In this document: piece by piece, positions 1 through 64,000 of the stretch
How the letters are laid out: each line of letters opens with the position of its first letter
How positions within the stretch are numbered: the first letter of the stretch is position 1
IMG/VR virus record: IMGVR_UViG_3300036770_008729
Coordinates: 186,001 to 250,000 of that record
DNA: 64,000 bases
Strand: one strand, 5' to 3'
Translations under genes and position numbers: made by a program
The notes under the pieces: model-generated
Seen by the model: the letters and a program-made list of their open reading frames with translations, nothing else
Database searches by the model: none
Told to the model about the DNA's origin: nothing

Positions 1-1289
1 ATTTCAGCATCTGGAGAACCTCTATCAGCATCATTAGGATCAGCAATTTCATCTTTAGCATTTCTATCAGGTTCTTGATAATTAAATTCAATGTACTCCT
101 CACTTAAAGCCTCTTCTTCCGAAATTTCATCATCATCTCGATAAAGATTCGGATTAACATCCACAGGAATATCACCAACGAATACTTGTATCGCGGGCAA
201 ATCTTTATTAGCCATTGCTCTAATATCATCTGGAATTTTGATGTTTAATTTAATTTTTGTTCCACTTGCATTTGTCTTAGATCCATCAGTTGTTTGAATA
301 GGATTCTCTTCTGTTTTTCCAGCCTTTGGTTCTTCAATAGGAGTGCCAGAAATTGGATCTTTGAATTCTATTAATTTACAATTATCATAGTCTGGTTTAC
401 AAAGTTCTAAATCATAATCATACTGACTTGCAATAAACTTATTTCTTTGAAGTTGAAAACAATATAATTCTTTTACAAAGTTCAAAAGATTCCAATCAGA
501 ATAATTACCTTCAAAGTATTCTCTACCATTAGTATCAGAATCTGTTTTAAAGTCTTGAAGTCTTTTCAGTTCATTATATTTTACTATTCCTTTATCATCA
601 TACTGCCGACCCGATCTTAGTTTTCTCTCACTTTCTGGAATATAACCAACACCATACTCACTTCCATTAGGCATAGTTAATTTTATGGTTTTCTCTATGT
701 CTATTTTCCTTATTTCTTTAGTTTCTCTAATTATCTGATCTTTTTCCAAATCACTTATTGAGAAACCTCTTGGATTACACCATTCAACACCACCTTCTGG
801 GTAGTAATTATTTTCATACCTTTCAATTGATTGTGTGCCAAATTCTTTTGTTTCCTTTAGAAACCAGAAAATCTCAACTTTGACTCCGTTATTAAAATAG
901 TAAGGATCATAACCGAAATCTCTTATCAGTGGGGTTCCTTGTTCCCAAGGATCTTGGAGTATTTGATAAATTGGAAATTCTTTTCCATTGATTGTTGTCG
1001 TGGCACTTCCATCTTGAAGTTTAGCCTGAGTGTCTAGATAATCTCTTATATAATCTATATCAGTGTAATCTGAATATCTCCCATTTGTGGAATATTCTAA
1101 AGGTTCTTTACCTGGAACTTTATTACCCGAACCATCTGTAACAACAACTTTTCTTTTATTATTAAAAAGACCGTCTTTATATAAAGAAACTTTAAGGTCG
1201 AATTCACCCTTCAATTCAGTAGAAGAAGTTCCTGCTTTACCTCTGATTATTTTTCTTGCTCTAACAACTTTTAATGGTGTATCTGCCAT
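1..1289 (-). CDS. Hypothetical protein, runs off window edge (MADTPLKVVRARK...), possibly virion-associated
   Basis: ATG at 1289; frame read manually at both ends is consistent and open; absent from ORF track because it is partial. Confidence 0.75.
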   Translation of the reverse strand, partial: MADTPLKVVRARKIIRGKAGTSSTELKGEFDLKVSLYKDGLFNNKRKVVVTDGSGNKVPGKEPLEYSTNGRYSDYTDIDYIRDYLDTQAKLQDGSATTTINGKEFPIYQILQDPWEQGTPLIRDFGYDPYYFNNGVKVEIFWFLKETKEFGTQSIERYENNYYPEGGVEWCNPRGFSISDLEKDQIIRETKEIRKIDIEKTIKLTMPNGSEYGVGYIPESERKLRSGRQYDDKGIVKYNELKRLQDFKTDSDTNGREYFEGNYSDWNLLNFVKELYCFQLQRNKFIASQYDYDLELCKPDYDNCKLIEFKDPISGTPIEEPKAGKTEENPIQTTDGSKTNASGTKIKLNIKIPDDIRAMANKDLPAIQVFVGDIPVDVNPNLYRDDDEISEEEALSEEYIEFNYQEPDRNAKDEIADPNDADRGSPDAE

Positions 1290-1320
1290 GATTATATTCT
1301 ATTTCTAGTATTAAATTAGT

Positions 1321-1827
1321 TTACTTCTTAATAACACTAAAATCATTTCTTAAATAATCATCAAAGTTCATCACTCTCTTTTTTGTATTATCTGTCTGTC
1401 CTTGACCTGCTGTAAAGTCTTGTCTTTTAGAAAAAATATCTTTCAGTGATTTTAAACTAATTCTTTTTTTTCTTGATTTCTTACCAGTTCTTGGTCCGTG
1501 ATTAGAACCCATTTCTGTTGGGATTTTCTGAAACACTCTATTTGCACCACTTGGATTATAGGGTATCGAAACATCACCTGATCCAACAGTTCCACCTTGT
1601 GATGCCCAATTAGGACCAATAGTTGCGCCTGCAAGTCCAGATGGTTGTGAATTAACAACAGCACCCATACCACCAGGACTAATACCACCAGTAGCTGAGG
1701 TATCTTCTAGTATTTCATATTCTTTGAAATTTATTAATTCCATGACTTTTTCAAGTAATATAAAATTCTTCTCTTTTTTGAGTTTCCATTTTAAATCATA
1801 TAATTCAAAAAGTGATAAATTTTTCAT
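1321..1827 (-). CDS. Hypothetical Gly-rich protein with CTS-like segment (MELINFKEYEILE)
   Basis: ORF track; TTTAATATATA motif just upstream. Confidence 0.75.
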   Translation of the reverse strand: MKNLSLFELYDLKWKLKKEKNFILLEKVMELINFKEYEILEDTSATGGISPGGMGAVVNSQPSGLAGATIGPNWASQGGTVGSGDVSIPYNPSGANRVFQKIPTEMGSNHGPRTGKKSRKKRISLKSLKDIFSKRQDFTAGQGQTDNTKKRVMNFDDYLRNDFSVIKK

Positions 1828-1896
1828 AAGTTATATATTAAATATCAACAACTACTAATTTTGAGATATATATATTTCAAATATTAACTCTTTTAG

Positions 1897-2571
1897 ATGG
1901 ATAGAATAAAAAAACTCGAAAATATAAAATTGATGAAAGAGTTAGATTTTATAGAATCCGAGTTCAATTACAAAAATGAAGTAATATGTGAAGCTGATAC
2001 AAGCTTTCTTAAAACCGTCAATGCTTATCTAGATATTCATCCAGAATTAAAAAAACTTTTTGACGAAAAGATTAACAGAAAGATAGAGGAAATGTTACAG
2101 AAAAAAACACAAGAGGAAAATGATCAATCAGAAAGTGAATTGGCCAACGATGAATTTGACTTGGCTACAGAATTACATTCTGAACAGCAAGAAGAAAAAG
2201 AAGAAATTGTTCAGAATGAAGAAAATTCAACAGATTTTCGAAATGAAAAGTTAAAAAAACTTTACAGAGAGATTGCTAAACTAACACATCCAGATAAAGT
2301 TAAAAATAATAAATTAAATTCTCTCTATCTTAAAGCCACATCATTTTATGATGAAAATAACATTTTTGGTATTTATGCAATTTGCAATGAACTCGAAATA
2401 TATTACGAAATAGACGAAAATGATAATGTTTTTTTGGTTGAAAAAATAAGCAACCTAAAACAAAGAATTAGTTTTTTAGAATCAACTTTTACTTGGAAGT
2501 GGAAACACACGGATGATTCAAAAGAAAGAGAGACTATAATAATAAGATATATTTCATCACAATTATCTTAA
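1897..2571 (+). CDS. J-domain-like (DnaJ/HscB-type) protein
   Basis: LYREIAKLTHPDK with HPD motif. Confidence 0.7.
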   Translation: MDRIKKLENIKLMKELDFIESEFNYKNEVICEADTSFLKTVNAYLDIHPELKKLFDEKINRKIEEMLQKKTQEENDQSESELANDEFDLATELHSEQQEEKEEIVQNEENSTDFRNEKLKKLYREIAKLTHPDKVKNNKLNSLYLKATSFYDENNIFGIYAICNELEIYYEIDENDNVFLVEKISNLKQRISFLESTFTWKWKHTDDSKERETIIIRYISSQLS

Positions 2572-3236
2572 CTTACGTTTATCTTAACATTTCTTGTATT
2601 AATCAATTCTTCTAGTTCATCTTTTCTAAATATCTTTTTGAAATATTCATTTTCTTTTTTTGGATCTACTAATTCCCATTCATTACCGTTTGAAGTTTGA
2701 TATTCATATTTTTCATTTCCATCTTCTATTTGTATATTTTTAGAAGATAGCTTTGAATAAAAGTTATTTATGTTTTCTAAAGCTTCATAAAGTTCAATAT
2801 CAGACCAACCCTGTGATATGACTTCACCATTTTTATCTTTAATCTCATCCCAGTATTGAAATAGTAGATAGATTGGGTTGATTGGTGGATTTGGAATAGT
2901 CTCTATATCAAAGGCCTCAGATCCATGAATAAACATAAATTTACAAGGCTTATTAATAAATGTTTGAAAGTCATCAGTATATTGTATGGGAGAAAGTCTC
3001 AATTTTATCGAGGTTAATGCATTAATAAAATCAGTTTTCTTTGCTAAGTCCTCTAAATCAATTTTAACAGAAAAGTCGGATTTTGGTAAATTAAACTTAT
3101 CGTGAAAATCCAATCTATTCATAGAAGATAATAGATCGTTCTTAAATACAGTCAATGATTCAGAAAGGTCAAATTGATTAAAAAAATCAATATTCAATGA
3201 TTCCGAAAACTTTTTATATGATTTGATGTATCTCAT
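2568..3236 (-). CDS. Hypothetical protein with CTS-like N-terminus
   Basis: MRYIKSYKKFSES; late-type motif upstream. Confidence 0.8.
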   Translation of the reverse strand: MRYIKSYKKFSESLNIDFFNQFDLSESLTVFKNDLLSSMNRLDFHDKFNLPKSDFSVKIDLEDLAKKTDFINALTSIKLRLSPIQYTDDFQTFINKPCKFMFIHGSEAFDIETIPNPPINPIYLLFQYWDEIKDKNGEVISQGWSDIELYEALENINNFYSKLSSKNIQIEDGNEKYEYQTSNGNEWELVDPKKENEYFKKIFRKDELEELINTRNVKINVS

Positions 3237-3252
3237 TAAAATGAAATATTGG

Positions 3253-3272
3253 TTTTAATATATATATTAAAA
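3253..3272. promoter_or_regulatory. Palindromic TTTTAATATATATATTAAAA, putative bidirectional late promoter
   Basis: Perfect 20-bp palindrome between two divergent CTS-type genes. Confidence 0.55.
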
Positions 3273-3287
3273 TATTTATGCAATTAA

Positions 3288-4673
3288 ATGAAGTGGCTCA
3301 GAAACTATCAATTATATAAAGAATCTAAAAGTGATACATACTCTAGTAAAAGCCTAATTCATGAAGTATGTGTTAGTATGGTTCTGTTAAATAATCAATT
3401 TTTAGATAACATTCTAGATAGAGGATTAAAAGCTAGATACTCAGAAAACTCTCAAATATTTTTAACCGATCTTAAGAATCTTGTATTGGCTAAAAATAGA
3501 TTGAATTTAGGTAAGTTCATAGAAGGTGATAAGTGTGTAGTAGATGATGAGGTATCAAAAATAAACATTCTTTTCGATGGATTAAAATTTTCAATAGAGG
3601 AAGATTGGGATAAATTAGTTAACGCAAGAATAACTGCAAGAAACATTATAGATAAACTACTACCTGATGAAAAATTAGAATCAGATAAAATAAAAACAAT
3701 ATATTGGGTAGGACCAAATAAAGATAAGGAACACCAAGAAGATATTGTTTTAGAAACATTAGATGGTAAACAATATTCTTTTTATTTAGATAAAAACCTT
3801 TCAAATCAAAAAACAGCTTCTTTTAATCTATTTGCTGATGATTTAATTGGTAAAGACATAGAAAAACTTTATAGTGAAGAATATTTAAATAAATGGGACA
3901 AACTTACTCAACAATGGATAACAACACTCTATGAGAATTCTAACAAAAATATTCAAATGCATATTGAGAAGTTCATCGACCCAAAAAGAATTGATACTTT
4001 AGGTTATTTTGAATACTTCGATATAAGACATCAGGATCCACGATTTAAGCATTTGGGAGAATTTATAAAAGAATTCAATAAAAATATTCTTAAATTTTCA
4101 GATTTAATGAATGAAATTTGGAAAAATAGAGATGTTTGTTTTTTAGATTCTGATAGAGTTTACAAAGAATGGATGGAAACAAAAGTAGTCATACTAAACT
4201 CTAAAATTCTTGAAAACTTAATAACATCATCACTAAAAACTAATTTTGCAGATGACATTCAGAAAGTTGAAAATAACTTTAAGTTAGCAGGAGGAACTGT
4301 AAAAATGAAACTTTTCAAGACTCTAGTTGAAAAGATGGGATGTTTAGAAAGACCAATTTACTTTTTAGGAAATAACGGCAATTCTTTTCATTTAATACCA
4401 CAGAGAAACTTTTTTAGAGATAATTATGACGATTTAAATATAAAATTTGATTATCATGTGAATTTCTCTGTAAGTGAAGAAGAAGAGAATAACGATTTTA
4501 TAATTAGAATTATTCTAGAATTAGAAGATGAAGTTCTTATAAAAATGAATATAAATGTCAAATTTACTGGTGGTGAAATGTCTGGTAAATTATCAGCAAA
4601 ATACAGATACGAATTATCCGATAGTTTCAACTACATAGTATCTAAAAAACTTACAGAAAATAAATCTGAGTAA
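3288..4673 (+). CDS. Hypothetical protein with CTS-like N-terminus
   Basis: 461-aa ORF, MKWLRNYQLYKES. Confidence 0.85.
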   Translation: MKWLRNYQLYKESKSDTYSSKSLIHEVCVSMVLLNNQFLDNILDRGLKARYSENSQIFLTDLKNLVLAKNRLNLGKFIEGDKCVVDDEVSKINILFDGLKFSIEEDWDKLVNARITARNIIDKLLPDEKLESDKIKTIYWVGPNKDKEHQEDIVLETLDGKQYSFYLDKNLSNQKTASFNLFADDLIGKDIEKLYSEEYLNKWDKLTQQWITTLYENSNKNIQMHIEKFIDPKRIDTLGYFEYFDIRHQDPRFKHLGEFIKEFNKNILKFSDLMNEIWKNRDVCFLDSDRVYKEWMETKVVILNSKILENLITSSLKTNFADDIQKVENNFKLAGGTVKMKLFKTLVEKMGCLERPIYFLGNNGNSFHLIPQRNFFRDNYDDLNIKFDYHVNFSVSEEEENNDFIIRIILELEDEVLIKMNINVKFTGGEMSGKLSAKYRYELSDSFNYIVSKKLTENKSE

Positions 4674-4742: not shown

Positions 4743-7700
4743 ATGGCAATTCCAGCAGGTTTTCCACTTTACCCTAACGGTGTGTGGAATGTTTCTTTTA
4801 GTTTTCCTGGTGTTCCACCACTCGATAAATTAAGTGATATATCTAAATCCATAGATGGTAAATCACCATCTTTACTTTTAATTCCAAATGTAGAATTTAT
4901 TCAGAAGGTAATTGAAGGTGATATTGGAATTGGTGACTCCATTTTGAAATCAGCATTTACAAAAAATTTCACATCACCATTGACTACTGGAAACGAATTT
5001 GTTTTCAAAAAGTTAGCTGAATTGACAAAGATTGATGTATCGAATATAGAAAAATATACAAAACCACCACAAGCACCTGTCAATACAAGTGCGGCAACCG
5101 GAGCAGCAGGTGCAGCAACTGGAGCAGCAGGTGCGGCAACTGGAGCAGTCAATAATCTTAAATCAAAGTCAAAATTTATTTTACCAGCCAGTGAAGTTAA
5201 GGTGAGTAGTGAATTTGACTTGAATGGTATTAAAGGTTTCGAAAAAGCATTGCTAAAATCTATTTTTGAGACTCAAAAACCTTATATGGAAATAGCAAAA
5301 CTTGTAGTTGCTAATATCTCCAAGGCTGAAGATATAGTTGCGAGAATATTGCCTTTGGCTTTGCCTATCGGAACACCTCTGAACACAAAATCAGCAAAAC
5401 CAATAGGTAATGCGGGTGATGCAACAAGACCAAAGGCGTTAGGATTTGGAGGCGGAGTGGAAATAAAGAAAGCGATTGCAAAATTAGACGCATTAAATAA
5501 AAAAGGTGGTGAAACAATAGTTACTCCAGATGGAAAAGCTATCAGGCAAACCAATTCAGCTTTAGGAAATGCTCCACTTACGGCATCACAATCAGCTGAG
5601 CAAACTAACTTTTCAAATAACAACTCACCACAAAGTGACATTCCACCAGATGGATATTCCTATAGTGTTATTTCAGCAATTTACTCGACAGGAACATTTG
5701 ATCCTAATATAAATTACGAATATACTTATATAGATGTTCCAGCTGACGAGGATATTGGTGAAAATGACCAAGGTCTTAACCTTAATGATGATGGTGATCC
5801 TTATAAAGGTTTTAAGCCAGATTGTATTATATTGGGTATTTTCGATAGTAAAGGAAATCCTCTCAATCCACTTGCTCAACTTGATGGATATGATAATAAT
5901 GGTCAAAAAGTTCAAGCTAGAAATAGTCAAGGTGCTTTACTTACAAAAGCTGGTTGGATTTTGGATTCACCAAAGTGGAAGTTTCCTAGCGGTGTTTATC
6001 AATGGCCTAGATATGGCACACCAACCTACAGATATAAAGGAACTGGAACAAATTTAGGACAGGTTATAAGTTCTAAAGAAAAACCAGCACCAAATATTGT
6101 TCTAGACTCTATAGTTGGTGATTGGGAAATAATGAAATATGATACTATTTATCCAGACGCTATACCCATAAAGAAAAATTTACTGAATAATGAAGATGCT
6201 ATAAAAGGAGATCCCGTAATAGAAAATTTTGATCCACCGGAAGTAACAGAGTATCAAAATTTTTTTAACGATTTAATTGAGTTTAGATTGGCAACCACTG
6301 ATGGTATTACACCCGAAGATAAAGCCGAAGCAAGAGCATCAGTATACCCACAGATAAATGTTCCGGCTCATTTAGAAAATGTTTTTTTATATGGTCAATC
6401 AAAATCATCTATTTACACCCCAATAAATGTTCCTGATTTACCTGAAAAAGATAATCCATATCCAGATACTCTTAGATATTCAATGAAACCTTATAAAATA
6501 TATTCAGCGCCAGCAGCCGCAGATTCGAGATTGAGAGGTGTCTTTGGTTCAAGAATGGATGATAGAAACGGTAACGTCTGGGTGGATCCAGAGGCTGATT
6601 ATCAGGCAAAAATTATCAGAGTTGATCCTACTACAAAAATAAAATATACGAAACCAGGTCAGAGTGAACCAATAGTTGCGGAGATTCAAGCATTTGTTAA
6701 AAATAATTTAATACTTAAAATTTCAGATGATAGACAATTTAATATAGAAGTATATAAATCAACAGATTCATCGGTTACGAATCCTCAGTATAACTTATAC
6801 AAGCAATTAACCGGACTTACTGCCTATAATTTAGAGAATTGGAACTACAATGATAATGATGGGATTCTAAATGATAGAATAGGATTCTCTCAAAGTTCTG
6901 ATGGTGGTGTAGGGTTTGGAAATAATGCACCAGTAAAGAACGACAAGAATGGGTATAGAATAACAATGTGGGGTGAAAGAAATACACCATATTACGATAC
7001 GGTAAATGGATATTTAGCATATAAAGAAGATGCTAATAAGTATGTAGAAATAGAAAAACAACCTGATGGATCTTGGACTTTTCAGAAATTCAGTTTTGAT
7101 GTTGTTGCTGAAGGTGTAGCAATAGAGATATTAAGACCAACACTAGAATCTACTGGACCACAAATAGATTTTTTATATCAGAGTTATAAATCAAATCCTA
7201 ATTACGGATATCCGGTTAATGGATTGACTAAGACATCACAATATAATACCTTTACCTCAGATCCTGGTCCTTTTCCACTGAGTGGTTCAAATTCAGTAAC
7301 CCAGACCTATATTATTAAAGATTCTGTTACAGCAAGTAATACAATAACATTTGAGAACGACTTAAGAAATGAATTAAAATATGCAAATAGTATTATATTT
7401 AGAAGAATCATAGTAGATCAAGCTTACACTTATGCTTCGAAAGACATAGAGCTTACAGTTGATAATACAAAAGTAGATGCTATAGTATATAATCCAGCTA
7501 AAAATGAGACAGTAGTTAAGTTTACAACTATTTTCAAAAGTATTTCAGGTGTGAACCTAAGACCTATAGAAAAAAGACACTGGATTCACCAAATTAAATA
7601 TAATGTGTTAGTTGCAGATTTATTTAGTAGAAAAATAAGAATACCAGTATCTGGTTTATATAAACTAACCGAAGATAAATCAATAGTTGAAATTCAAAAT

Positions 7701-54937: not shown

Positions 54938-55477
54938 TTAAAAATTCAATTTAGGTTTTAAAATTGTTCCACCTTTCTGATTAGACTTCCAATCAGATGC
55001 TGAGCTATGTGTCTTATCTTTTTGTTTATCAAAACCAAAAGAGGTATATGAACTTTTAGCAGTCATACCAATTTTCGCCAAGTGTTCGAATTTTTCTTGA
55101 TCCATTTCACCCACAGTAATTATAACAGCCTTTATAATGCTTTTAGTTTCTTCACCAAAGTCTTGGAGATTCCTGTTGATTCCATCTCTTCTATCTTGAA
55201 AGTATTGTCGAGCTTCTAAATATGGAGTTCTTTCATCAAGCTTCACATCATTTGATACTTCATTTGTAAATACAAGACAAGCTGCTAAAAACTTTTTTTG
55301 TGTTGATTTATCTTCAATTGACTTTTCAATAGTATTTAGTGGTTTACTCATCTGATTCGCAACTGCTGTTGTTGAAACACCACCTAAAAGTGCAATACTT
55401 GCTAGTAGATTATGATACCAAGCTTCATTGATACTTTGATATTCATTATAATTTTTTACAAACTTCATCTTTTTCAT
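54938..55477 (-). CDS. CTS-type protein with TM-like segment (start MKKMKF at 55477)
   Basis: MKFVKNYNEYQSINE; late motif at about 55500. Confidence 0.75.
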   Translation of the reverse strand: MKKMKFVKNYNEYQSINEAWYHNLLASIALLGGVSTTAVANQMSKPLNTIEKSIEDKSTQKKFLAACLVFTNEVSNDVKLDERTPYLEARQYFQDRRDGINRNLQDFGEETKSIIKAVIITVGEMDQEKFEHLAKIGMTAKSSYTSFGFDKQKDKTHSSASDWKSNQKGGTILKPKLNF

Positions 55478-55522
55478 AATTACATTTATTTTTATGATGT
55501 ATATATTAAAATGGAGGAGATA

Positions 55523-55572
55523 TTTTTTTGTATTTAATAGGCACAAAAAAAGGAGAAAGTTTAATTTCTCCT
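55523..55572 (-). terminator. Repeat R3 with minus-strand terminator aggagaaa-ttaaac-tttctcc-ttttttt
   Basis: Same hairpin in R2 and R4, each downstream of a minus-strand gene. Confidence 0.8.
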
Positions 55573-55591: not shown

Positions 55592-56110
55592 TTAACTCTT
55601 TTTTGTTAACCATTCTTTGTTAATACGCTCACGTTCACGATTCACATAATAGCGTTTGGTATATATATACTTTTCTCTTAATGACTCAGGTACTTTTGAA
55701 TATTCCACTTGAGTTTCAGGAAAAATTAATGAAGAATTTACTGATATTTCAGGTAAAGTTCTTAGCTGAGGTTTTACTAATTCTTTATTTACTTTTGATT
55801 CCCATTCACTATGATACTCCGACATTACTGATTCTGGTTCCATATCTTCTCTATACATAACATATAATTTTAATCTATATGAACCCATTTGCATAGAATC
55901 AGATATTGCAAAATTGACAGTTTTTTCATCATTAAGGTATAAATTTTCATTCTCATTTAAAGAATTAACAATATTAACTTTCCAACCATTTTTTTCTAAA
56001 TGTAATTGTAAGCCTTCTATAAAATCTTTCATTTTATGATCAATGTGTTCAGAAGTCTTTTGTATAGATAACCAGTTTTCAAATAACTTAATATACTTTA
56101 GATTTTTCAT
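55592..56110 (-). CDS. Hypothetical protein with CTS-like N-terminus
   Basis: MKNLKYIKLFEN. Confidence 0.75.
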   Translation of the reverse strand: MKNLKYIKLFENWLSIQKTSEHIDHKMKDFIEGLQLHLEKNGWKVNIVNSLNENENLYLNDEKTVNFAISDSMQMGSYRLKLYVMYREDMEPESVMSEYHSEWESKVNKELVKPQLRTLPEISVNSSLIFPETQVEYSKVPESLREKYIYTKRYYVNRERERINKEWLTKKS

Positions 56111-56295: not shown

Positions 56296-57606
56296 TTATT
56301 GTTCATCTGATAGAGAGTAGTTGATTTCATCCAGAATTGAATCGGTTGGGAATTTTTCTCCTCTTTTATTATAAAAGAAACCATCTCTAAATTTTACCAA
56401 TTCGGAATCATCATTCATATTATCAGGTAATACACAATCATTCCATAATTCGATAATTTGATTAGGTGTAGTAGTTTTGCCAATTTCCACTCTTAATACT
56501 TCGAGTTCTTCTGGAATTTCAATTTGGGGTTCTTGCTCTGATTTAGCTCCTTGTTCTGCTTTTATACGAGCTTCTATTTCTTTGGCATGATCTTCTAAGT
56601 TCTTTGCTGAGGCATCTGCCTTTCTAATAGGATTGCCTTTTTCGTCCTTAATTAGATTGCCGTCTTTATCTAAAAGAAAGTCTTCTTCATATTCTGGTAG
56701 CAACCCTAACTTTTTACGTTGTTCTAAATCTTTTTTATCTCTTTCTCTAATACCAGCAGCGGCTCTTTTATAAGTCTCTGGATTTAATTCTTCATTAACG
56801 AATGATTCAAATAATTTTAGGTATTTCATATTATTTTTACTTTCAGCAACTGATTTTTCAGACTCATCAATTACTCTTTTAAGTTCAGCTGTATTATCAA
56901 CACTAACAACTTCATCAAATCCTTCTTTTGATAAAACATCTTTTATTTTTTCTTCATCAAAAGGAATGCCTTTATCATCTTGTAAGTCATATGATGTAAA
57001 CATTCTATCAAATGCAGCAGGTGGTATAGTTTTAGATTTACCTTTAGCTTTCATTTCTTCTGATCTTTTAGCTGCCATTTTTTTGATAATTTCTTCAGCT
57101 CCTTTGAAGTTAAAAACAACTGCTACTTTATGATATTCGCCTTCAACACCTTCAATAACTTTAAGTGCTCCTTTTCTTGAACCAGAGTTCATATTGGTCA
57201 TATCGACTACAATATTTTCTTTTCCTTTACCTTCGGCAATTCTTTTGTTAAATATATCTTGAATTTTACCGTTAGCTTCTAAAACTCTATCATAAGAAAG
57301 TGGTGCCCAAGTCATATAAGCTGGTGATTTAATAACGGTGCCATATTTTTCATTTTTATCACCTTCTTTTTCAACATCTTTAATGGGTAATGAGAAAAGG
57401 TCATCATATGTCCAACCATACTCTGCATACTCTTCAGCAACTTTTTCGACAATATCATCTCTATTTATTACAAATGGTTGTATTTCACCAAATTTGGTTT
57501 TTATCCAAGTTGATTTACCTACAGATGGAGGTCCAATAAGAACATATATTGTTTTATCTTTAACTTCTTCACCTTCAAATACTCTGAAATTTTTAATATT
57601 CCTCAT
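56296..57606 (-). CDS. P-loop kinase (AAA_33 / PNK-like) with N-terminal and internal CTS-like motifs
   Basis: GPPSVGKSTW, INRDDI, VVDMTNM..SR; MRNIKNFRVFE and MKYLKLFESFVNEE. Confidence 0.8.
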   Translation of the reverse strand: MRNIKNFRVFEGEEVKDKTIYVLIGPPSVGKSTWIKTKFGEIQPFVINRDDIVEKVAEEYAEYGWTYDDLFSLPIKDVEKEGDKNEKYGTVIKSPAYMTWAPLSYDRVLEANGKIQDIFNKRIAEGKGKENIVVDMTNMNSGSRKGALKVIEGVEGEYHKVAVVFNFKGAEEIIKKMAAKRSEEMKAKGKSKTIPPAAFDRMFTSYDLQDDKGIPFDEEKIKDVLSKEGFDEVVSVDNTAELKRVIDESEKSVAESKNNMKYLKLFESFVNEELNPETYKRAAAGIRERDKKDLEQRKKLGLLPEYEEDFLLDKDGNLIKDEKGNPIRKADASAKNLEDHAKEIEARIKAEQGAKSEQEPQIEIPEELEVLRVEIGKTTTPNQIIELWNDCVLPDNMNDDSELVKFRDGFFYNKRGEKFPTDSILDEINYSLSDEQ

Positions 57607-57697: not shown

Positions 57698-57810
57698 TAG
57701 TCAGGACAGGAATCGAACCTGCATGTGGGCCTTGTGTGTATTTCAACTATACTGCGGGTTTATCCACTCCGTTTAACTATTCGGTGCGTTTACCATTTCG
57801 CTACCTGACT
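57698..57810 (-). ncRNA. tRNA-scaffold RNA A (113 nt)
   Basis: AGTCAGG/CCTGACT acceptor, GCG/CGC D-stem, GCAGG-TTCGATT-CCTGT T-arm, no canonical anticodon arm. Confidence 0.75.
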
Positions 57811-58457: not shown

Positions 58458-58563
58458 TAGTCAGGACAGGACTCGAACCTATAATCTGAATAACCTATAT
58501 CATCTTGATTTATTACCAATGATATTTTGTATTCACGCTTTAACCCAATTTCGCCACCTGACT
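58458..58563 (-). ncRNA. tRNA-scaffold RNA B (106 nt)
   Basis: Same acceptor; ATAGG-TTCGAGT-CCTGT T-arm; elongated helix in place of anticodon arm. Confidence 0.75.
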
Positions 58564-59223: not shown

Positions 59224-59345
59224 TAGTCAGGACAGGATTCGAACCTGTAAGGTAACATTCGGTTTCAAGACTCTCCTCTATACCGATCAGAGGATGTAGT
59301 TACCACTTTACTCGTCTAATGCGTCTACCATTCCGCCACCTGACT
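59224..59345 (-). ncRNA. tRNA-scaffold RNA D (122 nt)
   Basis: Same acceptor; GCG-GAATGGTAGA-CGC Leu/Ser-type D arm; ACAGG-TTCGAAT-CCTGT. Confidence 0.75.
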
Positions 59346-59653: not shown

Positions 59654-59674
59654 ATATATTCAAAGAACTATTTG

Positions 59675-59750
59675 TCGTTAGGGTAGGACTCGAACCTACA
59701 ATCTTTCGGGATTTTCACCCGAACGCTCTATCAAATTGAGCCACCTAACT
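59675..59750 (-). tRNA. tRNA-Phe-like element with damaged anticodon arm (pseudo-tRNA E)
   Basis: AGTTAGG acceptor (A1-G72 mismatch), GCTC/GAGC D-stem, TTCGGG-TGAAAAT-CCCGAA, GTAGG-TTCGAGT-CCTAC. Confidence 0.6.
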
Positions 59751-59839: not shown

Positions 59840-60640
59840 TTAAATTGGTAGATTTACTTTGGATAATATTTGGTTCGAAACATGAGTGTAAATTTCAGTA
59901 GTTTTTACATTTGAGTGACCTAATATTTTCTGAATTACTCTTAAATCAGTACCATTTTCCAATAGATTTGTTGCACAACTATGTCTCAATTGGTGAATGT
60001 GATATTTTTCACCCAAATATTTTTTAACAATTTGATTACAGCTACCAGAACTATATTGTAAACTATTTTGACCATTGAAAAGGTATTCTTTTGGTCTATA
60101 TTCTTTAAAATATTCTCTAAGTAATTCTAATATTTTCTGGGATAGGGGTAAGACTCTATCTTTTCTACCTTTAGCATTTTTAATATGAATAATCATTCTT
60201 TTGGAATCGATATCTTCAATTTTAAGGTTAATTACTTCCGATACTCTTAATCCGACTGAATAAGTTAAAGATAATATCGTTTTATGTTTAAGATTAGTAA
60301 TTTTAGATAATTGTTCTTTAATGTAATCACCATCAATAACCTGTGGTAACTTCTTCTCAGATTTGGGTCTTTTGAAACTAACCTTATCATATTTCTTATT
60401 AAGTCCGAATTTGTAGAGGAAACGGATTGCGTTAATAACCTGATTTTGTTGTGAAACAGAAGTAAAACTATAAGTATCTAAATATGATTGAAAATCATTA
60501 GATGTGAGTCTAGTTGGTGAAATTTTTATTGTAGCTAAAAATTGATTAATATAATGGAGATAGGATTTTATTGTCCTATCTGAGTAATTTAAATACTTCA
60601 ATTTTTGATTACAAATTTCGTAATAATCTGTTTTTTTCAT
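59840..60640 (-). CDS. Tyrosine recombinase (integron-integrase-like N-domain, XerD-like catalytic domain)
   Basis: GLRVSE, NAKGRKDR, HQLRHS, LGH, TEIYTHV; catalytic set intact. Confidence 0.92.
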   Translation of the reverse strand: MKKTDYYEICNQKLKYLNYSDRTIKSYLHYINQFLATIKISPTRLTSNDFQSYLDTYSFTSVSQQNQVINAIRFLYKFGLNKKYDKVSFKRPKSEKKLPQVIDGDYIKEQLSKITNLKHKTILSLTYSVGLRVSEVINLKIEDIDSKRMIIHIKNAKGRKDRVLPLSQKILELLREYFKEYRPKEYLFNGQNSLQYSSGSCNQIVKKYLGEKYHIHQLRHSCATNLLENGTDLRVIQKILGHSNVKTTEIYTHVSNQILSKVNLPI

Positions 60641-60692
60641 ATGTGAAATATATATGAAATAAGAAAAAAAGTTTAATTATAGATATAATCTA

Positions 60693-60699
60693 GTTAGTG
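60693..60699 (+). other. attI-like crossover core G|TTAGTG
   Basis: Complementary to CACTAAC of the first attC; no palindromic arm on the recombinase side. Confidence 0.65.
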
Positions 60700-60957
60700 T
60701 CAATATTGCCTATGCTTATTTACTACCTCTTTACCGCAGCTTTTACACGTCCACTTACCATACTGCTCGCCATTAACCCCAGTTCGGCTAACGCATTGGC
60801 AATACTTTTTGCTTCGCCCACTAACATCGTGTATGCGTAAGGCTGCTTCGTACCCTGCAATAAAATCTCGTACTTTTTGTTCGTACCATCCTGCATCGTC
60901 TATCTTATATCTGAAACTTTCAGCATATAATTCAGCTTGTTTTTTTATATCTTCCAT
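60700..60957 (-). CDS. Cassette 1 ORF, C-terminal Zn-ribbon-like
   Basis: CQC...WTCKSCG; starts inside its attC. Confidence 0.7.
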   Translation of the reverse strand: MEDIKKQAELYAESFRYKIDDAGWYEQKVRDFIAGYEAALRIHDVSGRSKKYCQCVSRTGVNGEQYGKWTCKSCGKEVVNKHRQY

Positions 60958-61012
60958 TCTAATTAAATTTATCGTTAATAAATCGCCCTACGCATACACG
61001 CAGCCGTTATAC
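60819..61012 (+). other. attC-like site 1 (194 bp)
   Basis: CACTAAC-at-16 bp arm...arm-cagcc-GTTATAC. Confidence 0.8.
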
Positions 61013-61282
61013 GCAATTATATAACACCCAATCGTGAATAAATTTTATTGAAGAATTAAAAGCATCAATCCAATCAGGATAACATCCACAATCTTCTTCT
61101 ACCCATTCACCATTTTGCTTCCAATAAACATATCCACGCCAACATATGCCAACATCTTCCAGCTTATATCCATCAGCAAGAACTTCAATAAAAATTCCTT
61201 TATCTGAATAACTGCGTATAACAGCAGGTATATTCAATTGCGGTTTCTGTGCTTCATTCAAGTTTTGTTCTTCTATGCTCAT
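61007..61282 (-). CDS. Cassette 2 ORF (start MSIEEQ)
   Basis: Subset of ORF-track 61007..61468; stop lies in the R box. Confidence 0.65.
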   Translation of the reverse strand: MSIEEQNLNEAQKPQLNIPAVIRSYSDKGIFIEVLADGYKLEDVGICWRGYVYWKQNGEWVEEDCGCYPDWIDAFNSSIKFIHDWVLYNCV

Positions 61283-61346
61283 TTGTTCTAAATTTAAGTT
61301 TTGTAATTTTAAGTCCGCAACTAAATATACCTGCAAAACGTTATGT
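61216..61346 (+). other. attC-like site 2 (131 bp)
   Basis: GTATAAC-a-20 bp arm...arm-aaaac-GTTATGT. Confidence 0.8.
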
Positions 61347-61415
61347 GTAAGTGTTCCGTTCATCTTACTAATCAACATTTTGGTTGAAAATTTTAAAAGA
61401 AAAATCCCACACACA

Positions 61416-62246
61416 TTAAATGATTTTAATATATTTTGGTGGTATATTATCATATGTGAAAAAACCACCCTTGAATCTCAAATCTTTATATAAAGATAAT
61501 CCTTTGAAGTTTTCTATTCTTAAATTAACATATTCACCACCTTTATCACCAACTAACTCTTGTTTTATTGAAGACATCCATTCTTCATTAGGCGATAAAT
61601 AAATTCTCTCAGGATAAAAACTTCTAGTATTTTTTGTTTTTGGTATTAAACCATATTTCATTATCTTATCTAAATTTTTGGAGTCGGTTGTGTGATAAAG
61701 ATATTCACCTTCAAAATTAACTTTGTCATCATAATTTGGTTCTATCATTATGGATATTCTATCACTAGATATTAAGGTTTTTTCTATATCATTTTTATCA
61801 GTTAGTTTTTCACCTGGTTTAAGATTTACGACAGATATAAAATATCCCATATTATCTATTAATGATATAAGACCAAGTGATAATTCCTTATTATTAAAAT
61901 CTGTAAATATTGATATATCACCATAATTAAATTCACTTATTTGTTTTTCTAAATCCGAGATAGTCTTGTCTATATCAACCCCTCCTTTAATTAGACTTTT
62001 TGTTAATGAATCATTTTTGTCTTTATAGCCTTTTAACATTCTATTCATCGTAAATTTATCGGTGATGATTTGATAATATGGTGAATTCACATCTTCGCCA
62101 AAATTAGATTTTTTATTTAGACCATTTCCAATAAAGAAATTATCTAATTTTTTTATAACAATATCAAGTTTATCTGATTTTAGTGTTTCGTTAAGTAAAT
62201 TAAATTTTCTAAAACTGTTTATATATTTTCTCATTTCCTTACTCAT
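61416..62246 (-). CDS. Cassette 3 ORF: CTS-type protein with C-terminal Tpt1/ART-like domain
   Basis: MRKYINSFRKFNLLNE; YLYHTT...I.KYGLIP...RIYLS. Confidence 0.7.
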   Translation of the reverse strand: MSKEMRKYINSFRKFNLLNETLKSDKLDIVIKKLDNFFIGNGLNKKSNFGEDVNSPYYQIITDKFTMNRMLKGYKDKNDSLTKSLIKGGVDIDKTISDLEKQISEFNYGDISIFTDFNNKELSLGLISLIDNMGYFISVVNLKPGEKLTDKNDIEKTLISSDRISIMIEPNYDDKVNFEGEYLYHTTDSKNLDKIMKYGLIPKTKNTRSFYPERIYLSPNEEWMSSIKQELVGDKGGEYVNLRIENFKGLSLYKDLRFKGGFFTYDNIPPKYIKII

Positions 62247-62359
62247 AGTATTTCTTTTATATATAAATATTGAGAATTAAAACTTCCACCCTTCTTTTTC
62301 TTTTAAAATTTTTGTTTAGTTCTCCGAATGAAATTTAGTAGTTAATAACCCACACCTAC

Positions 62360-62413
62360 ACATAACAAATGATAAACAACATTAAAACGATTGTTTATCA
62401 TTAGTCGTTAGAA
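62360..62413 (+). other. attC-like site 3 (54 bp)
   Basis: ACATAAC-aa-atgataaacaa...ttgtttatcat-tagtc-GTTAGAA. Confidence 0.85.
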
Positions 62414-62420
62414 GCAATGC

Positions 62421-62654
62421 CTAATCAAGCGTTACTTCACTTTTATAAAGTCCGATGTTAAATCGGTATGTTTCGTTCTTTGAGAATGATACAAAAATAC
62501 TTCCTCCGTATTGGTTTATATTTGTTGGTTCTCTGCCAAGCGATACATTTTTATAAGTTTCTGCTAAGTATTTTTGTACTTCCATAGGCACAGCTTCTAA
62601 CAGCAAGTTAGCGTTATTGCCTATTTCGTTGGTATTCGATGTTTCATTTTTCAT
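62421..62654 (-). CDS. Cassette 4 ORF
   Basis: Starts inside its attC. Confidence 0.7.
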   Translation of the reverse strand: MKNETSNTNEIGNNANLLLEAVPMEVQKYLAETYKNVSLGREPTNINQYGGSIFVSFSKNETYRFNIGLYKSEVTLD

Positions 62655-62729
62655 ATTAAAATTTGTTTAAAATTGATACTGTATTATTTCAAATGTCGGC
62701 AACAAACGCCAACTTGCGAATCGTTATAT
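62595..62729 (+). other. attC-like site 4 (135 bp)
   Basis: TTCTAAC-a-arm with one extrahelical base...-gaatc-GTTATAT. Confidence 0.8.
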
Positions 62730-63014
62730 GCAATTAAAAATGGGCAACGACCATCGTTTTGCATTTGGAAATTTCTTTTTATACATTGCTTTTACTCGAA
62801 GTTTTACGAGTTCTTTAATCTGCTCATCATTCATCCATTGGCTTGCTCTGTCATTCAGCCTTGTTTCTACAATTATGTCTGCTTCTTCGGATAGTAGGAA
62901 TGGGTGTCCGTGTTTGAACTCGTAAAACCATCTTTTCAACTGCCAATTTTTAACAGCATATAACAAAGTATTGCCAATAGTGGCAGTTTGTGAGTTGTTT
63001 GAAGTTTGTTGCAT
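62724..63014 (-). CDS. Cassette 5 ORF
   Basis: Starts inside its attC; stop lies in the R box. Confidence 0.7.
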   Translation of the reverse strand: MQQTSNNSQTATIGNTLLYAVKNWQLKRWFYEFKHGHPFLLSEEADIIVETRLNDRASQWMNDEQIKELVKLRVKAMYKKKFPNAKRWSLPIFNCI

Positions 63015-63087
63015 CTTATTTAGTTTATTGGTTAATCAAAATTTATCTCTTTTAATGCCACCATCGGCAATACTTGGCACGTTATAA
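62958..63087 (+). other. attC-like site 5 (130 bp)
   Basis: ATATAAC-a-20 bp arm...arm-ggcac-GTTATAA. Confidence 0.8.
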
Positions 63088-63097
63088 AACAGTTTAA

Positions 63098-63325
63098 TTA
63101 TAGTATTTTACCACACTTACTGCACACATAACATTGTCCTTTTTCAATAGCATTATGGTTACAAACCGATTTTATAACATCGGCTTGTTGCAATTTTTTT
63201 ACTAACTTATCCAGTTCACTATAAGCTAAGTGTTCCAGTTGAGTTTTGTCGTGTTCACCAAAGTAGTTTCTAATTAACTTTAGGTCTTTAATTTCCTGTT
63301 CTGTTATTTCAATTTCTATTTTCAT
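63098..63325 (-). CDS. Cassette 6 ORF, C-terminal Cys cluster
   Basis: VCNH..CYVCSKCG; starts inside its attC. Confidence 0.7.
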   Translation of the reverse strand: MKIEIEITEQEIKDLKLIRNYFGEHDKTQLEHLAYSELDKLVKKLQQADVIKSVCNHNAIEKGQCYVCSKCGKIL

Positions 63326-63383
63326 TATTATTTAGTGTTGCAAATCCGTAAAAAAACTGACAACAAGCCGCAAACAGTTATAA
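63172..63383 (+). other. attC-like site 6 (212 bp)
   Basis: TTATAAC-at-cggcttgttg...caacaagccg-caaaca-GTTATAA. Confidence 0.8.
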
Positions 63384-63665
63384 AACATTTAATGAATCGT
63401 CAGTAATATCATCCATCACTAAACAAGACTCATTATTAGTTTCGTGATAATTTAAAAATCCTTTTGGGTATTCAAATATTGTTGTTAATAATTTCATCCC
63501 TTCACCACAATGAGAACATTTTAATTCACCACGATATGTGTGTTCGTATTCAAAACTAATTGAGCGTTGTTCCTTATCTGTTCCTATGTGTTTCATTTCA
63601 ATAAAATGTTCTTCTCTACATTCTAAACATCTTACTCTAACCAAAGGATTTTTAAATTCTACCAT
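63378..63665 (-). CDS. Cassette 7 ORF, Zn-binding (CLEC...CSHC)
   Basis: ORF track; stop lies in the R box. Confidence 0.75.
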   Translation of the reverse strand: MVEFKNPLVRVRCLECREEHFIEMKHIGTDKEQRSISFEYEHTYRGELKCSHCGEGMKLLTTIFEYPKGFLNYHETNNESCLVMDDITDDSLNVL

Positions 63666-63676
63666 AAATAAACGTT

Positions 63677-63769
63677 TTATAACAAGGTATATATGAAATA
63701 CCCTATTAAGGTTTCTACTAATTTTTAAATTAATCGTTAGGGTACTTCATATATACCCAACCGTTATGT
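63677..63769 (+). other. attC-like site 7 (93 bp)
   Basis: TTATAAC-aa-19 bp arm...arm-caacc-GTTATGT. Confidence 0.85.
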
Positions 63770-63792
63770 ATAATAAATTAAAAAATATGAGT

Positions 63793-64000
63793 TTATTCAT
63801 TTTCCTTAATCCATTTATCAAAAAGCTTTTGTGGATTTTTATTATAAAGTCTCCATAATGTAAATCTCATCAAATCACTTTGGTTTAAACACTTCGGATG
63901 TTCCTTAACTATCAAATCAGCTTTCTGTTCATCAGTTAAACAATGTCTCCACCAAGCAAGTGCTTCTTCGGTTGCTGGTGTTTCTTTAGCTATGTGAGAT
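63793..64000 (-). CDS. Cassette 8 ORF, partial (...LAWWRHCL...KWIKENE)
   Basis: Translated manually; start lies beyond the window. Confidence 0.6.
   Translation of the reverse strand, partial: SHIAKETPATEEALAWWRHCLTDEQKADLIVKEHPKCLNQSDLMRFTLWRLYNKNPQKLFDKWIKENE

Follow-up and report, generated by a model that had tools for sequence, protein, structure and literature searches.

A Xer-type tyrosine recombinase without the integron-integrase insertion next to an integron-like gene cassette array in a large phage

Does a tyrosine recombinase that lacks the hallmark insertion of the integron integrases, but is encoded beside a row of hairpin sites, belong to a gene-capture platform built like an integron? 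The question is raised by a locus within a 64 kb stretch (hereafter, the window) of the 281-kb viral contig IMGVR_UViG_3300036770_008729 from the IMG/VR collection, in which several ORFs match phage protein families. A preliminary description of the sequence had suggested that the recombinase lacks the IntI-specific insertion, that the attC-like sites have an atypical geometry, and that the two might represent a distinct or convergent integron class. In order to evaluate this proposal, we first analysed the recombinase itself:

59840–60640, minus strand: complete Xer-like tyrosine recombinase of 266 aa, the presumed cassette recombinase.

The protein contains a Phage_integrase catalytic domain (5e-39) and an N-terminal SAM-like domain (Phage_int_SAM_4), and all catalytic residues are present (R132, K157, H216, R219, H242 and Y251). 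Its best match among the NCBIfam models is XerA_Arch, at 196.7 bits against a curated cut-off of 220, whereas the XerD and XerC models yield 162.3 bits (cut-off 329.6) and 158.6 bits (cut-off 335), respectively. The integron-integrase model TIGR02249 gives 163.7 bits, in two pieces, against a cut-off of 265, and PRK15417 gives 105.8 against 435. By comparison, six true IntI proteins from the retrieved loci score 392–433 bits with TIGR02249. Among solved structures the best sequence match is XerA of Pyrococcus (PDB ID: 4a8e; 6e-39). The alignment to VchIntIA (PDB ID: 2a3v) breaks into query residues 18–178 (chain residues 17–181) and query residues 214–262 (chain residues 265–313), so that 35 query residues stand where IntI has 83. 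When aligned with three of the true IntIs and with XerC and XerD of E. coli, the window protein, like the two E. coli proteins, lacks the whole block containing DPRSG..RRHH. The missing element is the roughly 50-residue IntI-specific insertion (about 35–50 aa between the conserved patches), which contains the I2 helix contacting extrahelical bases. Consistently, the AlphaFold model (pLDDT 88.8) has only a short loop at residues 182–197 and no extra helix, and superposes about equally well on XerA and on IntI. The absence of the insertion is thus confirmed. The preliminary description had a peptide running straight to HQLRH; the peptide is present but is followed by eight residues (YLGEKYHI) before HQLRH, so this wording is only slightly loose.

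To place the protein relative to other recombinases, a quick maximum-likelihood tree of 67 proteins was constructed. The true IntIs form a clade (96% SH-aLRT support) that excludes the window protein, which groups with phage and Bacteroidota proteins (81–94%, not starred). The deep nodes, relating IntI, Xer, an archaeal XerA-like protein and this clade, are unresolved. Therefore, the protein is not an IntI by domain, score or placement, although it might be either sister to IntI or convergent. No second tyrosine recombinase was found by tblastn with IntI, XerD and the integrase of phage Freya (see below) as queries, albeit only within the window, the remaining 217 kb of the contig being outside the reach of this search.

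Directly upstream of the recombinase gene, and on the same strand, lie seven hairpin sites. Reading the strand of the recombinase, each consists of a box (A)TAAC, a G, 3–4 unpaired bases, an arm of 13–22 nt, a loop of 9–150 nt, the complementary arm, a T and a box GTTA(T/G); the spacers are 3–6 nt on one side and 0–2 nt on the other. The sites are the following:

60819–61012, minus strand: attC-like hairpin site (194 nt), the loop of which holds the start codon of an 85-aa ORF.
61216–61346, minus strand: attC-like hairpin site (131 nt); DNA minimum free energy −16.1 kcal/mol on the minus and −12.9 on the plus strand.
62360–62413, minus strand: short attC-like hairpin site (54 nt) of a type that recurs in many arrays and metagenomes, with depth spikes of 75–182 at this element in three of the four other metagenomes compared (11 in the fourth).
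62595–62729, minus strand: attC-like hairpin site (135 nt).
62958–63087, minus strand: attC-like hairpin site (130 nt); minimum free energy −18.8 kcal/mol on the minus and −12.7 on the plus strand.
63172–63383, minus strand: attC-like hairpin site (212 nt).
63677–63769, minus strand: attC-like hairpin site (93 nt).

A purpose-built search for exactly this composite pattern revealed no site in the rest of the window or on the plus strand, and twenty shuffles of the whole window gave 0–4 sites (mean under 1). Only the composite of box, bulge, stem and box is specific, since the box CGTTATA alone is not enriched in the window (5 matches against 4.66 expected). Folded as single-stranded DNA, the minus strand forms the short box duplex, the one-sided bulge and one continuous stem, with energies of −9.5 to −18.8 kcal/mol and z-scores down to −4.8, whereas the plus strand folds less well at all five sites tested and leaves the boxes unpaired. 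The asymmetry noted in the preliminary description (spacers of 1–2 nt versus 5–6 nt) is the same feature seen from the plus strand. This geometry, with boxes reading ATAAC/GTTAT, a 3–4 nt bulge next to the crossover box and stems that are gapless for 14–25 bp, appears to differ from that of classical attC sites, which would be expected to have a roughly symmetric unpaired spacer and extrahelical bases, although our own fold-based comparison with sites beside true IntIs was too noisy, and found too few classical attCs, to be useful. An Rfam search at gathering thresholds found only tRNAs.

In order to find out whether recombinases of this clade co-occur with the same hairpins, we examined relatives of the protein. 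Those sharing 52–92% identity are present on 80 IMG/VR loci, many from contigs of 100–360 kb, while the best match among 185,579 species genomes is only 63% identical. On the viral loci, 355 sites were found in 464 kb upstream on the recombinase strand, against 11 of opposite polarity and 24 in 617 kb downstream. A stricter search counting only Watson-Crick pairs gave 323 sites, against 5 of opposite polarity, 5 with mirrored spacers and 8 downstream. Of the 53 loci with at least 2 kb of upstream sequence, 52 have a site and 47 have two or more. Notably, features not imposed by the search are conserved: G after TAAC (95%), T before GTTA (97%) and AT at positions −8/−7 of the first box (79%/96%). 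Positions beyond (A)TAAC/GTTA(T), on the other hand, are not consistently paired across 325 sites (35% Watson-Crick), and their conservation is therefore not base pairing. Loci from Bacteroidota genomes and metagenome-assembled genomes (MAGs), namely Flavobacterium, Bacteroidales and a MAG labelled Bacillota, carry the same geometry next to recombinases of 48–63% identity. The scarcity of sites of opposite polarity (5 of 328) led us to reject an inversion system of the shufflon type.

About 55 nt before the start codon of the recombinase, nearly every viral locus has a half site, in which variable sequence ends in TAAC and is followed by a conserved stretch (TAAC|TAnnATAT). At the hairpin sites the base after TAAC is G, whereas here it is T. 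A loose version of the pattern is matched by 62 of 74 loci, and the junction is also found in the close loci from Bacteroidota genomes. We consider it a functional analogue of attI, with no claim of sequence homology to attI1. In the window, the docking site and the cassettes, the boundaries of which were drawn from box to box by analogy with the comparisons described below, are arranged as follows:

60641–60697, minus strand: attI-like docking site between the last cassette and the recombinase start codon; the junction box CACTAAC is at 60691–60697 and is followed by TAGATTATATC.
60691–61005, minus strand: cassette next to the docking site, with ORF 60700–60957 (85 aa, no family match).
61006–61339, minus strand: cassette with ORF 61007–61291 (94 aa), the stop codon of which lies inside the TAAC box.
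61340–62406, minus strand: cassette with ORF 61416–62246 (276 aa, no family match).
62407–62722, minus strand: cassette with ORF 62421–62654 (77 aa).
62723–63080, minus strand: cassette with ORF 62724–63014 (96 aa), with the stop codon inside the TAAC box and the start codon in the hairpin loop; a related cassette with box-to-box homology is present in another locus (L114).
63081–63376, minus strand: cassette with ORF 63098–63325 (75 aa).
63377–63762, minus strand: cassette with ORF 63378–63665 (95 aa), the stop codon of which lies inside the TAAC box.
63763–64000, minus strand: start of the next unit, which runs off the window.

In the locus retrieved from the same contig (L081, in which coordinate x corresponds to window coordinate 70641 − x), two more sites follow, so that the array reaches about window position 65304 and comprises nine sites over 4.6 kb. 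A stop codon in the box and a start codon in the loop hold for most window cassettes but are not general, being found at 72 and 135 of 325 sites, respectively.

Comparison of the arrays indicates that cassettes move and that the breakpoint is the first box. Segments 6580–6894 of locus L108 and 2131–2445 of locus L131 are 100% identical over 315 bp, from ATAACG to TAACG, and have unrelated flanks, in phages whose recombinases are about 70% identical to the query. The cassette that abuts the docking site in locus L092 (ending TAAC|tagattatatc) is internal in L102, with the homology ending at TAAC. Of 33 independent left ends of shared segments, 20 lie at TAAC, against 3.7% expected, and almost none at the GTTA box. 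However, only 5 of 33 right ends are at TAAC, and many shared segments are hairpin plus leader joined to different ORFs and end at the start codon; part of the left-end signal is therefore homology within a family of related sites, as with the repeats of chromosomal integrons, rather than recent transfer. Contigs of other freshwater and subsurface metagenomes hold the 276-aa cassette with no differences over 976 nt (run X4) and diverge directly after TAAC, and foreign sequence meets the TAAC of three other sites. The latter evidence is only supporting, since it comes from assembler contigs, many joints of which had short sides (those with sides of 21–26 nt were not used).

Further insight was obtained from cultured relatives. 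The integrase of Polaribacter phages Freya_1–10 is only 40% identical to the window protein but groups with its clade (94% SH-aLRT). The six genomes compared (Freya_1, 5, 6, 8, 9 and 10) differ directly upstream of the integrase gene by discrete units; where Freya_1 and Freya_10 were compared outside the array (3.9 kb on one side and 279 bp on the other) they are 99.9–100% identical. Freya_10 has units 1–902, 903–3793 and 3794–4100, each ending in ..(C/T)(C/T)AAC, and these are followed by ACCCCTATAAC..ATG of the integrase. Freya_9 lacks exactly the last unit, Freya_5 ends after the first unit, Freya_6 has another unit there, and Freya_1 has none. The exact cleavage position cannot be placed within (T/C)AAC, because both partners share it. 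Two Freya units begin with hairpins of the same geometry as described above. In Danklef_1–5, differences in length equal the shifts of the integrase position, and Ingeline has the same half site. Not every unit is a one-gene cassette, since some hold several ORFs (Freya block 903–3793; L081 5344–6483). The paper describing these phages mentions only 'an integrase, potential temperate lifestyle' (PMC8776804).

To determine which strand folds, non-Watson-Crick positions were counted in stems found with the unbiased search. G·T outnumbers A·C 10:1 (440 against 44), and the strand selected to fold is therefore that of the recombinase and the cassette ORFs. Because this is also the mRNA strand, the excess fits selection on an mRNA hairpin as well as on folded single-stranded DNA, and an RNA role of the hairpin may coexist with the DNA role.

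Taken together, the comparative evidence makes it likely that the locus is an integron-like cassette platform of a large phage, served by a dedicated Xer-type tyrosine recombinase that is not an IntI, in support of the preliminary interpretation. The same system is widespread in phages of Bacteroidota and visibly gains and loses cassettes in the cultured Polaribacter phages. Each cassette consists of a hairpin site followed by, usually, one small ORF, and ends at the (A)TAAC box of the next site. That the recombinase catalyses the exchange is inferred, as no recombination assay was performed and no circular cassette or excision junction of this phage was observed among the assembler contigs. 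It is likewise inferred that the sense ('bottom') strand is recombined as a folded single strand, as in integrons and in CTX-phage integration by XerC/XerD. In this model the R-box duplex and the first turns of the long stem act as the two binding sites, and the one-sided 3–4 nt bulge marks the strand, in place of the extrahelical bases that IntI reads with its extra domain.

Of the alternative explanations, the one that survives best, although we consider it unlikely, is that the recombinase is an ordinary phage integrase or a Xer-type multimer resolvase that merely sits next to a hyperplastic region, whose hairpin-bounded small genes are shuffled by homologous or illegitimate recombination between repeated regulatory stem-loops, as proposed for the PeSL cassettes of T4-type phages (PMC2839356). 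Indeed, Bartlau et al. (PMC8776804) read the Freya and Ingeline integrases as markers of a temperate lifestyle, hairpin-leader modules are shared between different ORFs, and some loops carry a Bacteroidetes-type TAnnTTTG promoter motif (39 found against 14 expected). However, the arrays have a fixed polarity and position relative to this gene in 52 of 53 loci, cassettes end exactly at the conserved docking junction, no sites occur elsewhere in the 64 kb, and the sequence shared at the breakpoints is only 4–7 nt, too short for homologous exchange.

It is also unlikely that the hairpins work only at the RNA level, as terminators, processing or stability elements, or in translational control of each small gene, with the box motifs being part of that signal and the modular pattern reflecting transcription units. 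The identity of the folding and sense strands, the G·T excess, the frequent location of start codons in the loop and an A-rich tract before the ATG are in line with this possibility, but an RNA function explains neither the box-to-box identity of cassettes between unrelated arrays, nor the half site without a hairpin next to the recombinase, nor the precise insertions and deletions in Freya; the two roles are not exclusive. Finally, it is very unlikely that the adjacent recombinase is unrelated to the sites: although Qi et al. (PMC9892861) found attC clusters without IntI in virulent phages and showed that IntI1 can recombine them, and the AAC/GTT core triplets are the same here as in attC, no other tyrosine recombinase is present in the window (217 kb of the contig could not be read), co-location with this clade holds across the 80 viral loci and in Bacteroidota genomes, the attI-like site is next to this gene, and the stems lack the interruptions expected for extrahelical bases.

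Classical integrons share with this system a tyrosine recombinase gene next to a docking site, followed by an array of small, highly diverse, mostly single-ORF cassettes, as well as imperfect hairpins with terminal ..AAC/GTT.. boxes, a crossover in the box that lies 5' on the folding strand, and new cassettes lying next to the docking site. Read on the plus strand of the window, the layout is that of a classical integron, with the recombinase gene to the left and pointing away, a docking site ending in G|TTA next to it, and cassettes each ending in a hairpin whose far box, G|TTA, is the crossover point. The cassette ORFs, however, are on the folding strand and are transcribed towards the recombinase gene, rather than being divergent from it, so that the hairpin is at their 5' end and often encloses the start codon. 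In addition, the host is a phage genome.

We found no description of this recombinase-array system in the literature searched. The rAID-1 arrays of Bacteroidales (10.1101/471110) also occur in the Bacteroidota lineage and have a XerD-like tyrosine recombinase beside a co-oriented array of short, low-GC genes with repeated intergenic motifs, called 'reminiscent of integrons' by their authors. In rAID-1, however, the recombinase is at the 5' end with the genes downstream of it, whereas here the array is upstream and runs into the recombinase; its cargo is immunity genes in bacterial chromosomes, and no hairpin or box structure, or crossover point, is described in the text examined. CTX-phage integration may provide a precedent for a plain Xer-type recombinase, without the IntI domain, recombining a forked hairpin formed by one DNA strand, but would represent a single integration of a whole filamentous phage at the host dif site by host enzymes, not a cassette array with its own recombinase. 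PeSL elements (PMC2839356, PMC4122927) similarly bound small ORFan genes of phages that are shuffled as modules, but they are scattered over several regions and have no dedicated site-specific recombinase or docking site, whereas here one polar array abuts a recombinase gene, with breakpoints at a 4-nt box. The attC clusters lacking a neighbouring integron integrase (CALINs) reported in virulent phages, including a Polaribacter phage, and also with methyltransferase cargo (PMC9892861), were found with standard attC models and were not linked to a non-IntI recombinase; phage P12002L has no homologue of the present recombinase at E below 1e-25.

Integrons are defined, and searched for, by the IntI insertion and the attC model. 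A working cassette platform without that insertion would show that the insertion is not needed for hairpin-site cassette capture, that current integron censuses may miss a whole class, and that phages own a dedicated engine for acquiring and shuffling small accessory genes. It would also alter the reading of the 'integrase' used as a lysogeny marker in cultured flavobacterial phages such as Freya, Danklef and Ingeline. More broadly, it seems somewhat more probable than not that phages of Bacteroidota, from 40-kb siphoviruses to genomes over 280 kb, and some Bacteroidota chromosomes carry their own class of integron, which works on a folded single strand, like IntI/attC, but uses a minimal Xer-type recombinase, reads a one-sided bulge instead of extrahelical bases, and encodes its cargo on the folding strand. 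It would be either an independent invention or the insert-less sister lineage of IntI, and a main generator of the ORFan and anti-defence 'hyperplastic' regions of these phages.

With respect to the cargo, 352 box-to-box intervals have a median length of 386 bp and a median ORF of 89 aa, and 346 cassette ORFs fall into 293 clusters, 259 of which are singletons. The ten cassette ORFs of the window's array, seven inside the window and three in its continuation in L081, match no family in Pfam or PHROGs. Among the 40 longest cassette ORFs of related arrays, however, are five DNA methyltransferases (orphan enzymes), a Mom-family protein, an RNA ligase, phosphoesterases, a glycosyltransferase, a GNAT and a PARP-like (ADP-ribosyltransferase-like) protein, which suggests a bank of counter-defence and host-takeover genes.

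Notably, two neighbouring cassette ORFs, at window positions 62421-62654 and 62724-63014, share a similar N-terminal peptide (M..TSN....IGN..LL), which is encoded by the loop and 3' arm of their hairpins. The site sequence thus constrains, or donates, the first 20 or so codons. Among the hairpin sites themselves, the short 54-nt type with its AATGATAAACAA stem, located at window positions 62360-62413 (8228-8281 in L081, an IMG/VR locus from the same contig as the window), was found to represent a very abundant site family. Its contig depth reached 75–182 in three of the four other metagenomes examined (11 in the fourth), compared to about 1–30 for its neighbours, and the element recurs in many arrays (loci L085, L092, L101, L102, L113 and L131).

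Co-isolated cultured Polaribacter phages Freya_1, 5, 6, 8, 9 and 10, as well as Danklef_1-5, differ by whole units inserted at the half site next to the integrase. In Danklef, the genome length differences equal the shift of the integrase position. Locus L099 contains 9 sites downstream of the recombinase in addition to 9 upstream, and might hold a second array or a tandem platform. In the Prolixibacteraceae MAG UBA8504 (locus L015), the homologue of the recombinase carries an in-frame stop codon, although the attI-like junction is intact, raising the possibility that this is a decaying platform. Finally, a recombinase of 272 aa from a gammaproteobacterial MAG (locus L012), which also lacks the IntI insertion, was placed as sister to the whole IntI clade (84% SH-aLRT) and is a candidate insert-less relative of IntI.

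The region just downstream of the recombinase gene contains a cluster of tRNA genes:

57698-57810, minus strand, tRNA gene
58458-58563, minus strand, tRNA gene
59674-59750, minus strand, tRNA gene

Two of these were identified by Rfam and are 106–113 nt long, which is intron-like; both were missed by ARAGORN. The third one was called by ARAGORN as tRNA-Phe with the unusual anticodon AAA. In addition, a further tRNA-like sequence was noted by eye near 59230-59345.

Several unrelated ORFs around the array were found to begin with a similar N-terminus (MKYLKLFENF, MKYIKTFESY or MKNLKYIKLFENW):

window 55592-56110
window 54938-55546
window 56296-56829 (internal)
L081 330-896
L081 2248-2877
L081 4518-5039

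This N-terminal sequence is reminiscent of the capsid-targeting leader of T4 internal proteins and may represent a shared sorting or processing signal.
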